NCBI RefSeq assembly: GCF_016433145.1
Contig: NC_058131.1
Coordinates: 138,045,794 to 138,109,793, forward strand
DNA from: Gracilinanus agilis
Taxonomy: Eukaryota
DNA: 64,000 nucleotides
Direction: 5' to 3'
Shown: positions 1,691-58,830 of the stretch, piece by piece
Position numbering within the stretch: position 1 is the first letter of the stretch
How the letters are laid out: each line of letters begins with the position of its first letter
The notes under the pieces: generated by a model
Databases searched by the model: none
What the model was told of the DNA's origin: nothing
The model's input: only the letters and a program-made list of their open reading frames with translations
Position numbers and translations under genes: made by a program

Positions 1691-3386
1691 TATTATTTTT
1701 TTCCAGATTTAAATATTTTATTTTTTTAGAAAAATTTTCCATGGTTACATGATTCTTGTTTTTACTTTCCCCTTCATCGCCTTTCAAACCCTCCCCCCAT
1801 ATGCAATGCACATTTCCACTGCTTTTAACATGTGTGATCAGTCAAGACTTATTTACATATTATTGATAGTTGCATTGGTGTGGTCATTTAGTGTCTACAT
1901 CCCAAACGATGTCCACAACAACCCATGTGTTCAAGCAGTTGCTTTTCTTCTATGTTTCCACTCCCGCAGTTCTCCCTCTGAATGTGGGTAGTGTTCTTTA
2001 CCATAAATCACTCAGAATTGTCCTGGGTCATTGCTTTGCTGCCAGTACAGAAGTCCATTATATTCAATTTTACCACAGTGTATCAGTCTCTGTGTACAAT
2101 GTTCTTCTGGCTCTGCTCCTTTCACTCTGCATCAATTCCTGGAGGTCTTTCAAGTTCACATGGAATTCCTCCAGTTCATTATTTCTTTGAGCACAGCAAT
2201 ATTCCATCACCAACATATGCTACAATTTGTTCCGCCATTCCCCAATTGAAGGGCATACCCTCGTTTTCCAATTTTTTTGCCACCACAAAAAGCGCAGCTA
2301 TAAATATTTTTGTGCAAGTCTGTTTATCTATGATCTCTTTGGGGTACAAACCCAGCAATGCTATGGCTGGATCAAAGGGCAGGCACTCTTTTAGAGCTCT
2401 TTGGGCATAGTTCCAAATTGCCATCCAGAATAGTTGGATCAGTTCACAACTCCACCAGCAGTGCATTAATGCCCCAATTTTGCCACATCCCCTCCAACAT
2501 TCACTACTCTCCCCTGCTATCATTTTAGCTAATCTGCTAGGTGTGAGGTGGTACCTCAGAGTTGTTTTGATTTGCATTTCTCCAATTATTAGAGATTTAG
2601 AACACTTTCTCATGTGCTTATTGATAGTTTTGATTTATTTATCTGAAAATTGCCTATTCATGTCCCTTGCCCATTTATCGATTGGGGAATGGCTTGATTT
2701 TTTTTATACAATTGATTTATCTCCTTGTATATTTGAGTAATTAGACCCCTGTCAGAGTTTTTTGTTATAAAGATTTTTTCCCCAGTTTGTTGTTTCCCTT
2801 CTGATTTTGGTTGCATTGTTTTTGTTTGTACAAAAACTTTTTAATTTAATATGATCAAAATTGTTTTACATTTTTTATTATTTTTTATATTTTATTATTT
2901 CATTATTTAAATTTTTTACATTTTGAAATTTTTTTCTAACTCTTGCTTGGTTTTAAAATTTTTAATTTAAAATTTTAAAATTTTCCCTTACCCATAGATC
3001 TAACAGGTATACTATTCTATGTTCACCTAATTTACTTATAGTTTCCTTTTTTATAGTCAAGTCATTCACCCATTCTGAATTTATCTTGGTGTAGGGTGTG
3101 AGATGTTGATCTAAACCTAATCTCTCCCATATTGTTTTCCAATTTTCCCAACAGATTTTGTCAAATAGTGAATTTGTGCCCCCAAAATTGGGATCTTTGG
3201 GTTTATCTGTCTTGCTGACATCACTTACCTCAAGTCTATTCCACTGATCCTCCCTTCTGTCTCTTAGCCAGTACCATATTGTTTCGATGACTTCTGCTTT
3301 ATAGTATAGTTTAATATCTGTTACTGCTAGGCCACCTTCCTTCACGTTTTCTTTTCATTATTTCCCTTGATATTCTCGATCTTTTG
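1691..3386 (-). mobile_element. 5'-truncated opossum-type L1 (ORF2 C-terminus plus 3'UTR)
   Basis: Minus-strand ORFs 2962-3345 and 2179-2613 give L1 ORF2 motifs (DIKLYYKA, HLTPYTKINSEW, TTLRYHLTP, HCWWSC, PFDPAIALLGLYPKEI). Poly-T at the left end. 15-bp TSD tttttgtttgttttt at 1676-1690 and 3387-3401. Confidence 0.95.
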
Positions 3387-5892: not shown

Positions 5893-6478
5893 GCATATGC
5901 TTTTTTCAATAGATGCAGAAAAAGCCTTTGACAAAACACAACATTTATTCCTATTAAAAACACTCAGGAGCATAGGAATAAATGGAGCTTTCTTTAAGAG
6001 GATAACTAGTATTTATCTAAAACTATTAAGAAGCATTATTTGTAATAGGGATAAACTTGATGCCTTTTCATTAAGATTAGAGATGGAGCAAGGATTACTA
6101 GTATCAGTACTATTTAATATTGTATTAGAAAGGCTATATTTAGCAATAAGAGAAGAAAAAGAAATGGAAGGAATTAGAATAATCATTGATGAAACAAAAA
6201 TATCACTCTTTGTAGATGATATGATGGTAGGTTTAGAAAATCATAAAGGATCAACTAAAAAACTAGTTGTAGTATATATGTAAATCATTAGCATTTCTCC
6301 ATATTATCAACACAGTTCAACTGAAAGAAATAGAGATGCCATTTAAAGAAACTGCATATAATATATAGTACTTGAGAGTATATATGTCGAGACAAACCCA
6401 GAAACTATATGAATAGAATTACAAAACACTTTTCACATGAATAAAGTCATATCTAAACAATTGGAGAAACATTAACTT
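5893..6478 (+). mobile_element. Old L1 ORF2 RT fragment
   Basis: SIDAEKAFDK...FLLKTL, LFNIVLE..AIREEKE.EGI, SLFVDDMMV.LEN are L1 RT motifs. Confidence 0.9.
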
Positions 6479-41212: not shown

Positions 41213-41391
41213 NNNNNNNNNNNNNNNNNNNNNNNNNNNNNNNNNNNNNNNNNNNNNNNNNNNNNNNNNNNNNNNNNNNNNNNNNNNNNNNNNNNNNNNN
41301 NNNNNNNNNNNNNNNNNNNNNNNNNNNNNNNNNNNNNNNNNNNNNNNNNNNNNNNNNNNNNNNNNNNNNNNNNNNNNNNNNNNNNNNNNNN
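41213..41391. other. Assembly gap (N run)
   Basis: 179 consecutive N. Confidence 1.
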
Positions 41392-44983: not shown

Positions 44984-45178
44984 TCTTTTTTTTTTAATTT
45001 TAAACCCTTAACTTCTGTGTATTGACTTATAGGTGGAAGATTGGTAAGGGTAGGCAATGGGAGTCAAGTGACTTGCCCAGGGTCACACAGCTGGGAAGTG
45101 TCTGAGGCCAGATTTGAACCTAGGACCTCCTGTCTCTAGGCCTGGCTCTCAATCCCCTGAGCTACCCAGCTGCCCCCA
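44984..45178 (-). mobile_element. SINE-1_MD/MdoSINE with TSD
   Basis: 15-bp TSD gttaccatgtttctt at 44969-44983 and 45180-45194. Confidence 0.95.

Positions 45179-45939: not shown

Positions 45940-45980
<41 letters not shown>
45940..45980. repeat. (CA)n microsatellite
   Basis: About 20 CA units. Confidence 0.95.
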
Positions 45981-48084: not shown

Positions 48085-48255
48085 TTAGAATCAATACTAT
48101 GTGTTGGTTCTAAACCAACTAGGTAAGGGCTAGGTAATGGTGGTTAAGTGACATGCCCAGGGTCACACAGCTAGGAAGTTTCTGAGGCCACATTTGAACC
48201 CTGGACCTCCTATCTGTAGGCCTGACTCTCAGTTCACTGAGTCACCTAGTTGCTC
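48085..48255 (-). mobile_element. SINE-1_MD-type SINE
   Basis: ttagaatcaatactatgtgttggttct...cccagggtcacacagctaggaag...actgagtcacctagttgctccc. Confidence 0.85.
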
Positions 48256-48288
48256 CCAACAAGTCATTCATCAAATAATATTTTTATT

Positions 48289-48294
<6 letters not shown>

Positions 48295-48323
<29 letters not shown>
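48295..48323. repeat. (TA)n microsatellite at the start of an old L1 remnant (to about 48560)
   Basis: Directly visible TA run, followed by reverse L1 3' sequence. Confidence 0.85.
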
Positions 48324-48326
<3 letters not shown>

Positions 48327-48928: not shown

Positions 48929-49067
48929 NNNNNNNNNNNNNNNNNNNNNNNNNNNNNNNNNNNNNNNNNNNNNNNNNNNNNNNNNNNNNNNNNNNNNNNN
49001 NNNNNNNNNNNNNNNNNNNNNNNNNNNNNNNNNNNNNNNNNNNNNNNNNNNNNNNNNNNNNNNNNNA
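48929..49067. other. Assembly gap (N run)
   Basis: 139 consecutive N. Confidence 1.
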
Positions 49068-49452
49068 ATACCAAGAAGAATAATGGTATTAAAAGGATGG
49101 GCTTTTGCCACCCCTTCGGGACCCAAGTTTACATTTAAAGGAATAGTCTAAAGGGTTGTTATATTTTCAGAGACCTAATCTGGGGTGTTTTGGGGTGCCA
49201 TTTGCACTTGCAGAGATTCATTGCAGAGTTTATCCAACTAGGACTCTCATTATATGTGCTAATTTTATAAGGATCTATTCTAGTAGGAGAAAATCCTCAC
49301 TTTTTCCATTTTTAAAAAATTGTTATTGGATAGTCTATTTCCTGATATGCTTACTTTACAATGCTGACCAACTTCTTTGAGATAATGTATATATGATTAA
49401 ATGTTTAAGTACTGATTATCTGTTGTATTACTGCTACATTTCAAATATTCAG

Positions 49453-49719
49453 ATGAATATGAATAATGTTGATATTGCATCCCTAAGGCACTGGTGCCTG
49501 GCAATACAACTAGAACCATACAGAGAATTTCTAATTAAAAGAATGCCAGGTGACTTAGATGACAAGGATGTTGAGAGAATTTTACAAGATGCTGTTGATA
49601 TGTTGGAGAAATATGAAGTGCTCACTAAGATATATTATTTGAAAGACAAAAGTTTGTCTGTTTTCTACAAATTTCCTGAGAATATGGATACTTCTAAAAA
49701 TCTTGATAAGATAGTTTAA
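49453..49719 (+). CDS. PNMA/MOAP1-family N-terminal-domain protein (Ty3/Gypsy Gag-derived), 88 aa; in-frame upstream ATG at 49393 gives 108 aa
   Basis: SLRHWCLAIQLEPYREFLIKRMPGDLDDKDVERILQDAVDMLEKYEVLTKIYYLKDKSLSVFYKF aligns without gaps to the PNMA N-terminal pattern as I recall it (LLEDWCxGMDMxPRKALLIxGIPxxCxxxEIxETLQAxLxPLxxYRVLGRMFxRxxxxxAVxxEL). Acceptor ttcag|ATG at 49452/49453. AATAAA at 49718-49723 overlaps the TAA. Confidence 0.78.
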   Translation: MNMNNVDIASLRHWCLAIQLEPYREFLIKRMPGDLDDKDVERILQDAVDMLEKYEVLTKIYYLKDKSLSVFYKFPENMDTSKNLDKIV

Positions 49720-49849
49720 TAAAGGAGCTTTGCTATTTTCCATAGGAAATCTGGCTCACCTATTGTATAGTCTTCTTATATTTTACTTCCCTCTACATGG
49801 TCTCAGATTCAAGAACATTGGCCTTCTTACACACATACATTCCATCTCT

Positions 49850-50026
49850 CAATTCCATGCCTTTTCACTGGTTGGCTTCCCTGCCTGGAATTCTCTCCCT
49901 CTATATGTCTGTCTCCTAGACTTCTTGGCCTGCCTTCAGAACTCAATTCAAATGCCACTTTGTGTAAGAGGCTTCTACCTTGCCCCTTTTCTTTTGTTTT
50001 TTCCTGGGATGATCTTCAGTTTACTC

Positions 50027-50071
<45 letters not shown>

Positions 50072-50235
50072 CAGACATATTATATATGTATTCTGTACAT
50101 AGTTTTTGCATGTCATTTCTTCCATTAGATTAATTGAGGACAAGCATCATGTTTTTATATTTCTTTGTAACCCAGCATTTAGTACAGTGTCGACACATAA
50201 TAATTGCATAATAAATGTTTGTTGACTGATTGGAT
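49850..50235 (+). mobile_element. L2 3' end containing a (GATA)n microsatellite (50028-50071)
   Basis: ctgcctggaattctctccct...ccttcagaactcaattcaaatgccac...ataaatgtttgttgactgattgga. Confidence 0.8.
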
Positions 50236-50260
50236 GACCATGTGCTATTCAGTAACCAAC

Positions 50261-51391: not shown

Positions 51392-51637
51392 AGGGGCAGC
51401 TGGGTGGCTCAGTGGATTGAGAGCCAAGCCTAGAGATGGGAGGTCCTAGGTTCAAATCTGGACTCAAACACTGCCTAGCTGTGTGACCCTGGGCAAGTCA
51501 CTTGACCCCCATTGCCTAGTCCTTGCTGCTCTTTTTGCCTTTGAACCAATACATAGTATCAATTCCAAGACAGAAAGTATGTGTTTAAAAAAGAAAGAAA
51601 CAAAGAAACAAAGAAAGGAAGGAAGGAAGAAAAGAAA
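51392..51637 (+). mobile_element. SINE-1_MD/MdoSINE with A-rich tail and TSD
   Basis: ggggcagctgggtggctcagtggattgagagcc. TSD agaaatagaaggggc at 51377-51391 and 51638-51652. Confidence 0.95.
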
Positions 51638-52689: not shown

Positions 52690-53520
52690 AAAGAAGTGTA
52701 TTTGGACCCATCCACTCTAGAAAGCAGTTTGGAACTATGCTTCCCAAATTACCAACCTGTGGATTGCCTTTGATACAAAAATGCCATTACTAGGTCTATA
52801 TCCCAAAGAGATCAAAGAAAGAAGAAAAGGACCAATATTTGCAAAAATATTTATAACATTTCTTCATAGTGAAAAAGAACTGGAAGTTAATGGGAGAAGT
52901 ATCAATTAGGATAAAACTAAACAAGTTGTGTTGTATGAATGTAATATAATATCATTGTACCATAAGATTTGACAAAAATAATTGTTTCAGGGCAACCTAG
53001 TGATACTTGTATGAATTGATGCTGAGTGAAATGAGCAGAACCAGAAAAATGATTTGTATTTATATAATAGCAATCTCACGATAAACAGTTTTGAAAGACT
53101 TATGAACTCTGATCAAAACACTGAACGTGGGATAAGCTGGATCAGTGGATTGAGAGCCAGGCCTAGAGACAGGAGGTCCTAGGTTCAAGTCTGACCTCAG
53201 ACACTTCCTAGATATGTGACCCTGGGCAAATGACTTAACCTCCATTGCATAGCTCTTACCACTCTTCTGCCTTAGTGCCAATACATAATATTGATTCCAA
53301 GATGGAAGAGAAGGGTTTAAAAAATACTGACCAACCATGGTTTTAGAAGGTTGTTGATGAAGGCTACCTACCTCCTAACAAAAAAGTGATACATTGAAGA
53401 TATAGAATAAAACATATTTTTATAGTCAATGCTGGGATTTATTTTATTTGACTATGCATATTTCTGAAAAGAGGTATTTTCCCCTCTCCTATGGCACTGG
53501 GAGATGAAGAAATAATATAA
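52690..53520 (+). mobile_element. Old L1 3' end interrupted by a SINE-1_MD-type SINE (about 53140-53320)
   Basis: cattactaggtctatatcccaaagagatcaaag (LLGLYPKEI). SINE ggatcagtggattgagagccaggcctagagacaggagg. Confidence 0.85.

Positions 53521-54142: not shown

Positions 54143-54202
<60 letters not shown>
54120..54202. repeat. (TC)n(CA)n compound microsatellite
   Basis: Directly visible in the sequence. Confidence 0.95.
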
Positions 54203-57795: not shown

Positions 57796-58770
57796 AGTCA
57801 AAAAACATCAACATGGATGTCATTTTGATCCACTTCTCATATTATGCCATACTGTCCAAGGGCCTAAGTGAGATTGACACCCATTCAAAAGAATACAGAA
57901 TAACGATTCAGAGGAAAAACTCTGTGTGTGTTGGGTGGGGACATTCTATCCTGACAATCATAATAAGCAGTTGAATGAACAGCATATTGAATTGGTTCAT
58001 TGTATGTATCTCTTAGACAGATGCTACAGATGAGCAATGACTTGGATCCAGAGCTGAAGAGGAGGAAATGATCAGTCTGGATTGTATTTGGAATGTTCTG
58101 TAGCATTTTCAATGAATCCTCAGCCACTTTATAAAGTAGGAATAATTGTAAGCAGAAATATTCTTCTATAATTTATAATCCTCAACATTACCCGGTACAC
58201 TGACTGGGTATGAAACTTACATATGATCACATACCTAGTGAGTGTCAGAAGCAGTAATTGGCCCTGGGCTTTGGTCACCCCAGGGCACCTCTTCATCCAT
58301 TGCATTATGCCCCCCTTATCATTTTCTATAGCTACAAATCACAGAAAATAACCAAAATAAAAAGTGCAATTGACATAAAGGTCAAAGGAAACATGTATGA
58401 TGGGCATAAATAGGACATAGACTATTACTAGTGATACCTCAATATCATAAAATAGATCATCTAGGAAATTCATGTTGAAGAAAGGACCAGTTATGTAGAG
58501 AGAGTTAATTATAATAGATGGACAGTCTATGTGCTATCATTGTACTCATGGAATGTTAAGTTTTCCTCTATGACAATCATTAAAACCAAATATTAGAATA
58601 AGCTGAACTGAGAAGACATTTGGCTCATTGTATCATGTAGTGTTAGAAAAAGACCTAAAAGAAGGTCCCCAAATATTTTCTTTCTGCCCCTCCTATGCTT
58701 CTCAGAGGATTTATAGGATAACATAAAATATTTTATTTTGTAGCACTTTAAGGACTGAAAAACATTTTAA

Positions 58771-58775
58771 ATATA

Positions 58776-58807
<32 letters not shown>

Positions 58808-58830
58808 CATATGTGTGTGTGTACACAAAC
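58771..58830. repeat. (TA)n/(TG)n microsatellite
   Basis: Directly visible in the sequence. Confidence 0.85.

Follow-up and report, generated by a model that had tools for sequence, protein, structure and literature searches.

An isolated open reading frame related to the N-terminal domain of PNMA-MS1 in the marsupial Gracilinanus agilis

The reading frame and its genomic surroundings

A PNMA-type open reading frame (ORF) is located at 49393..49719 on the + strand of the window (the whole 64-kb stretch of Gracilinanus agilis DNA analysed here) and encodes 108 amino acids from its first ATG to a TAA. From stop to stop, the frame is open over 112 codons (49381-49716). Two more ATGs in the same frame, at 49453 (giving 88 aa) and 49459 (giving 86 aa), both lie inside an (ATGAAT)2 motif, and a pyrimidine-rich tract ending in cag is found immediately 5' of the ATG at 49453. 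At the other end, the stop codon forms part of the heptamer TAATAAA (49717..49723, +), in which TAA (49717-19) overlaps AATAAA (49718-23). An initial annotation, made from the letters of the sequence, had described an 88-codon frame (108 codons from the upstream ATG) and this overlap between stop codon and hexamer, and both descriptions are accurate. However, the heptamer occurs 44 times in the 64-kb window versus ~31 expected; being commoner than expected, it carries no weight as poly(A) evidence. Stops make up 6.1% of + strand codons in this 35%-GC window, and 18 ORFs of at least 100 aa are present. The length of the PNMA-type ORF is therefore unremarkable, and its interest rests on homology. 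No record of the exact 108-aa and 88-aa products was found among 15 billion proteins.

The surroundings of the ORF are SINE- and L1-rich (~35% GC), with L1 ends, SINEs of MIR/CORE type and a (GATA)n stretch recognizable near it. SINEs with a MIR-like core lie at 45048-45178, 48128-48258, 51405-51533 and 53138-53266 and are 83-84% identical to each other in pairwise comparisons. Two repeat pairs (52767-52814/54988-55079 and 57104-57151/57597-57688), each in the same orientation and ~80% identical, resemble by eye the 3' end of L1 ORF2 and the 3' UTR, which suggests that two L1 3' ends lie downstream. Microsatellites occur at 45941-45980, 54160-54200, 48295-48325, 50029-50075 and 58765-58815 (two of them (CA)n, two (TA)n and one (GATA)n). 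Far 5' of the ORF, an L1-type ORF2 fragment at 5897-6283 (+) matches Pfam RVT_1 (E 1.7e-9), and two segments on the - strand, 2179-2613 and 2962-3345, look L1 ORF2-like by eye, with no Pfam family matched.

The flank directly downstream of the ORF (49760..50260) is strongly diverged, SINE-like by eye and not PNMA-derived, with a (GATA)n interruption at ~50029-50075. This SINE-like element is unfit for dating the truncation of the ORF (see below): its sequence has diverged too far to be matched with other copies, and a later deletion could have juxtaposed an old element and the ORF. Upstream, a run of 138 N (48929-49066), 327 bases 5' of the first ATG, may hide part of the 5' context; another run, of 179 N, spans 41213-41391. 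No CpG island was detected in the 64 kb (maximum observed/expected ratio 0.47, 198 CpGs). Neighbouring exons of any kind were likewise not found, with no further exon-like or domain-bearing ORF among the tested pieces.

Relationship to PNMA-MS1

The ORF product matches the Pfam profile PNMA_N (PF20846, 'PNMA N-terminal RRM-like domain') with 38.2-39.2 bits (E ~1e-9), the curated gathering cut-off being 27 bits; residues 29-101 of the ORF correspond to profile positions 4-76 of 92. Among solved structures, the top match is PNMA2 (PDB 8uyo; E 1e-5, gap-free). A HMMER search of 1.84 billion representative proteins returned a sole protein at E ≤ 0.001, P0001, a 462-aa protein of which residues 2-77 are 46% identical to residues 27-102 of the ORF. 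P0001, a Petaurus protein named 'paraneoplastic antigen Ma1 homolog', contains PNMA_N, PNMA_C and a terminal CCHC knuckle, and is located within a laminin gene, as is the Tasmanian devil protein P0005. Since this position and architecture are those published for PNMA-MS1, a gene of 456-458 aa in LAMA3 (PMC3789554), we identified P0001 as PNMA-MS1. Six more PNMA-MS1 orthologues were found, in wombat, tammar, koala, devil, bilby and opossum. BLASTP aligns residues 26-102 of the ORF with PNMA-MS1 residues 1-77, gaplessly over 77 residues and with 45% identity.

No protein closer to the ORF than PNMA-MS1 was detected in a library representing 15 billion sequences, including seven annotated marsupial proteomes, and the whole-library search gave no eutherian protein at E ≤ 0.001. 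A metagenome scan for orthologues or host-derived marsupial DNA found no relative. A second scan returned a 21-residue match (ADIAILRHWCL...) at L002 200-262 (contig Ga0137414_1262990), which was taken as chance: similarity stops there, and the contig is unrelated. The PNMA N-terminal (RRM-like) Gag origin and the gapless alignment put forward in the initial annotation are thus upheld by the PNMA2 match, by the PNMA-MS1 match and by the profile search it had proposed, which proved significant with a score well above the cut-off. Judged by these matches, the ORF goes back to the 5' part of the Gag gene of a PNMA-type retrotransposon, with marsupial PNMA-MS1 as a distant relative.

The homologous part of the ORF consists of 77 codons (49468..49698, +), equivalent to PNMA-MS1 aa 1-77 and to PNMA_N positions 4-76. 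Its identity to the seven PNMA-MS1 orthologues is 40-45% in each case, the only gap being against Macrotis P0006, which has a 1-aa insertion. By comparison, the orthologues are 82-94% identical among themselves over aa 1-77 (6 of 7 compared gaplessly, the bilby with its 1-aa insertion), and full-length identity between the PNMA-MS1 proteins of different species is 74-84%, with the ORF far below. Because the ORF is equally far from all seven orthologues, it falls outside the PNMA-MS1 group, from which it diverged before the marsupial radiation.

At the DNA level, we compared the window with the Tasmanian devil PNMA-MS1 locus (L001). Homology is confined to an ungapped block of 238 bases with 61.8% identity (49462..49699, +; L001 2995-3232), which begins 6 bases 5' of the PNMA-MS1 ATG and stops at codon 77. 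Beyond this block, blastn detected SINE sequence only between the window and the devil PNMA-MS1/LAMA3 locus; a SINE with a MIR-like core beside devil PNMA-MS1 (L001 6626-6762) represents the sole other DNA similarity of both loci. The devil locus contains a strong splice-acceptor-like site (within L001 2860-3000), with a pyrimidine tract ending in aaacag, ~118 bases 5' of the ATG, consistent with the two-exon structure published for tammar. Sequence homologous to this upstream region of devil PNMA-MS1 is absent 5' of the window ORF. The start codon also differs: PNMA-MS1 reads AAT AAT ATG GAT, whereas the window reads AAT AAT GTT GAT (GTT at 49468-49470). With the homologous ATG replaced by GTT, translation would need an ATG 3, 5 or 25 codons upstream; the homology starts 3 codons past the ATG at 49459 and 5 codons past that at 49453.

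At the C-terminal end, the homologous stretch is followed by six codons, NLDKIV (49699..49716, +), without significant similarity to PNMA-MS1, and the ORF ends 7 residues past profile position 76. The PNMA-MS1 orthologues cover PNMA_N positions 4-92, compared with 4-76, or roughly four-fifths of the domain, for the ORF. Absent from the ORF are PNMA-MS1 aa 78-92 (IPSTITVGENTWKLV), which equate to profile positions 77-92 and are worth ~14 bits in PNMA-MS1; the terminal strand segment (ITVGENTWKLV in PNMA-MS1), near-invariant among the orthologues, is lacking. Two apparent continuations of the homology were considered and rejected. A MAFFT pairing of NLDKIV with PNMA-MS1 aa 105-110 involves one identical residue, and frame 3 after the stop, which reads EIW... 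and recalls the ENTW of PNMA-MS1, is put down to chance, since it is unsupported by tblastn, HMM and blastn.

Over the 73 profile positions that are common to both, the ORF scores 39 bits and the PNMA-MS1 orthologues 54-57 bits, a difference of 15-18 bits. The ORF matches 28 of the 54 columns that are invariant in PNMA-MS1, with W, C, P and several L/V/F retained. Devil PNMA-MS1 and eutherian PNMA2 have 21 residues in common, 11 of which are kept in the ORF, two glycines having been replaced by R and E. The locus had initially been called an intact mini-gene. The frame is indeed open and does encode the PNMA N-terminal domain alone; 'intact', on the other hand, does not describe a domain that stops at profile position 76 of 92, has GTT in place of its ATG and scores 15-18 bits below its relatives.

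The rest of the gene was searched for in several ways. With PNMA-MS1 as query, tblastn against the whole 64 kb found the ORF stretch only (all else E > 4), as did an HMM of the seven PNMA-MS1 orthologues applied with filters off to 3581 six-frame pieces (all else E > 19). Pfam searches with 20 + strand pieces from 49.7-57.6 kb gave no gag or pol domain, and those with 16 other ORFs (15 of them at least 100 aa long) gave only the L1 RVT_1 at 5897-6283. No LTR-like direct repeats were found around the ORF between 45 and 60 kb, where the repeats are MIR-core SINEs, L1 3' ends and microsatellites. The remaining PNMA-MS1-like gag (capsid, zinc knuckle) is gone from the 64-kb window. The initial observation that no LTR, capsid, zinc knuckle or pol accompanies the ORF therefore holds, by tblastn and HMM, by Pfam on the tested pieces and by the repeat search in 45-60 kb.

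Constraint and decay

Differences between the ORF and devil PNMA-MS1 are distributed over the three codon positions as 30/21/40, of 77 each (chi-square p = 0.05). Nei-Gojobori analysis of the same pair yields pN 0.32, pS 0.68, dN 0.42 and a saturated dS of ~1.8; the resulting pairwise dN/dS of ~0.23 sums both lineages and inherits the saturation of dS. Stops and indels are both absent (0 and 0) across the 77 homologous codons. The coding-like pattern of differences together with the lack of indels suggests that most of the divergence between the ORF and PNMA-MS1 arose under coding constraint. The path of this divergence includes the PNMA-MS1 lineage and any time spent as an active retroelement, and pN/pS thus says nothing of constraint at the ORF locus itself. 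Three-point distances assign the ORF a branch of 0.57 versus 0.23 for PNMA-MS1 (~2.5x, from 69 sites and with wide error). The indicators that concern the ORF lineage, namely the profile score, the replaced residues and the branch length, point to relaxation.

How long a frame of this kind survives was evaluated by simulating the neutral decay of 77 codons, with AT-biased substitutions and indel-to-substitution ratios of 0.05 and 0.10. The probability that the frame is open and gap-free was 0.19-0.33 at d = 0.05 substitutions per site, 0.03-0.11 at d = 0.1, 0.002-0.017 at d = 0.2 and ≤ 0.003 at d = 0.3. Neutral decay since before the marsupial radiation (d ≥ 0.3) is effectively excluded, and neutral decay of no more than ~0.1-0.15 substitutions per site is consistent with the open frame. 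Were the entire excess of the ORF branch neutral (d ~0.17), the frame would have stayed open with a probability of only ~0.005-0.03, which counts against a relic. The purifying selection at which the open frame had initially been taken to hint is not borne out for the ORF lineage: the open frame fits limited neutral decay, and pN/pS is not lineage-specific.

Foldability was assessed using AlphaFold2. The 88-aa product, modelled with an eight-sequence alignment, reached a pLDDT of 51, and a control, PNMA-MS1 aa 1-110 with the same shallow alignment, reached just 57. Because the control is also low, neither model is usable. The low-confidence control model puts a strand at PNMA-MS1 aa 88-93, in the region that is missing from the ORF.

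Origin of the reading frame and comparison with known systems

On balance, we consider the ORF likely to be an orphan stump, probably without function, left from the 5' part of a gag paralogue of PNMA type (Ty3/Gypsy, Gypsy12_DR-like). It would stem from an independent insertion of the retroelement lineage that gave PNMA-MS1 or from a very early PNMA-MS1 duplicate. The precursor may have evolved as a coding sequence through most of its divergence, until all beyond codon 77 was lost by a deletion or rearrangement within the RRM-like domain; since then, the stump would have drifted by roughly ≤ 0.15 substitutions per site, still without acquiring a stop or frameshift. It would not give rise to a functional protein, and both TAATAAA and the ATGs upstream would have arisen by chance in AT-rich DNA. 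We favour this explanation because the domain is truncated, the start codon is lost, divergence is faster and there is no annotation or promoter signal. Opossum and tammar are reported to contain 12-19 PNMA 'pseudo' loci each (PMC3789554), and so a single open stump is unsurprising; moreover, the ORF was noticed precisely for being open. For PNMA-MS2, a second PNMA locus, arrival in the opossum lineage has been argued to postdate the American-Australian split (PMC3789554). PNMA-type elements may thus have been active relatively late, and a youngish relic is plausible. Several points speak against a relic: the 77 codons are free of indels and stops, their substitutions look coding-like, a clean 77-codon block next to complete loss of the rest needs a deletion exactly there, and an in-frame ATG is present 3 codons 5' of the lost start.

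The main rival explanation is a domesticated mini-gene for a shortened PNMA RRM-like domain of 86-108 aa under purifying selection in marsupials. Its frame is open where 6% of codons are stops, it aligns gaplessly to PNMA-MS1 with a pairwise dN/dS of ~0.23, many core residues are retained (28 of the 54 PNMA-MS1-invariant columns), the lost start has a replacement in-frame ATG and the 3' end a plausible poly(A) hexamer, and the simulation rejects neutral decay since before the marsupial radiation; genes consisting of the RBD without the rest are also an established outcome in placentals (PMC11011659). We nevertheless regard this explanation as unlikely. Profile positions 77-92 are missing, whereas in human PNMA-family genes most matches to the RBD profile cover it entirely, and the RBD shows conservation among placentals (PMC11011659). 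The dN/dS is not lineage-specific and suffers from a saturated dS, the ORF scores below PNMA-MS1 on the profile and sits on a longer branch, and no similar annotated protein exists in any marsupial in the library with its seven annotated marsupial proteomes. Neither a CpG island nor other promoter evidence accompanies the ORF, AATAAA is common in the window, and the structure prediction (pLDDT 51; control 57) is uninformative. More doubtful still is the full claim of a micro-protein gene of 86-108 aa that is under purifying selection, independent of PNMA-MS1 and the first such capsid-less PNMA gene outside placentals. Convergent capsid-less domestication in marsupials, as raised in the initial annotation, is treated here as a hypothesis.

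A constraint of another kind seems to us improbable, in which the block would have been kept, for instance, because it contributes an exon or UTR to some longer or non-coding transcript or has a regulatory role, with an incidental open frame. In its favour, the ATG at 49453 directly follows a pyrimidine-rich tract and cag, and the first exon of PNMA-MS1 is non-coding and spliced ~118 bases 5' of the ATG (PMC3789554); however, the tested pieces contain no further exon-like or domain-bearing ORF, the third-position excess points to coding rather than to RNA or DNA constraint, and nothing indicates transcription. We give very little credence to the initial suggestion that the ORF could be the published PNMA-MS2 locus, for which the only argument is that both are short, PNMA-related marsupial ORFs. 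PNMA-MS2 comprises 112 aa, with homology restricted to the central capsid (Iwasaki et al. 2013, PMC3789554). It is located between OR1Q1 and an OR1J2-like pseudogene, which are 12 kb apart, and is known from opossum only, with no expression detected (PMC3789554). The present ORF comes from the N-terminal domain, and the window is without capsid homology (tblastn, HMM). Furthermore, 17 of its 18 ORFs of at least 100 aa were scanned against Pfam, revealing no capsid or olfactory-receptor family, and there is no ORF of at least 300 aa, and hence no intact OR gene.

The meaning of the locus depends on which of these explanations applies. If the ORF is conserved and expressed, capsid-less exaptation of the PNMA RNA-binding-like domain would have taken place in marsupials as in placentals, and a PNMA domain without its last strand could be retained. 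If, instead, it is a relic, as we favour, it would record a second marsupial PNMA-type gag lineage, separated from PNMA-MS1 since before marsupials radiated, which bears on whether one domestication or several insertions lie behind marsupial PNMA sequences.

The presumed ancestral source of the domain is the RBD-CA-NC Metaviridae of reptiles, amphibians and fish (for example, Gypsy-30_Ami and Gypsy12_DR; PMC11011659). These are likened to the ORF by description only, and differ from it in their LTR, capsid, nucleocapsid and pol, which were not found at this locus. PNMA-MS1 and the ORF share the RRM-like N-terminal domain family and are collinear over codons 1-77, with 40-45% amino acid and 62% nucleotide identity. 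Unlike the ORF, PNMA-MS1 encodes a protein of 456-462 aa in which the N-terminal domain is complete and a capsid and a CCHC knuckle are present. PNMA-MS1 lies in an intron of LAMA3. It is the only marsupial gene covered by Henriques et al. 2024, in whose text and supplements a second marsupial RBD sequence does not appear (PMC11011659).

The placental genes CCDC8 and PNMA8A-C belong to the PNMA family and have the N-terminal RBD but no capsid (Henriques et al. 2024, PMC11011659), and are in this respect like the ORF in idea. However, their RBD is full length, three of the four join it to unstructured stretches at the C-terminus and they are conserved in placentals, whereas the RBD of the ORF is truncated and has nothing fused to it. 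Finally, marsupials have other short, isolated PNMA/Gypsy12_DR-related fragments that resemble the ORF, namely PNMA-MS2 and, in opossum and tammar, the 'PNMA pseudo' loci, all of which are considered to be pseudogenes or remnants of retroelements (PMC3789554). In contrast to the N-terminal-domain-derived ORF, PNMA-MS2 stems from the capsid and is located in an OR cluster.
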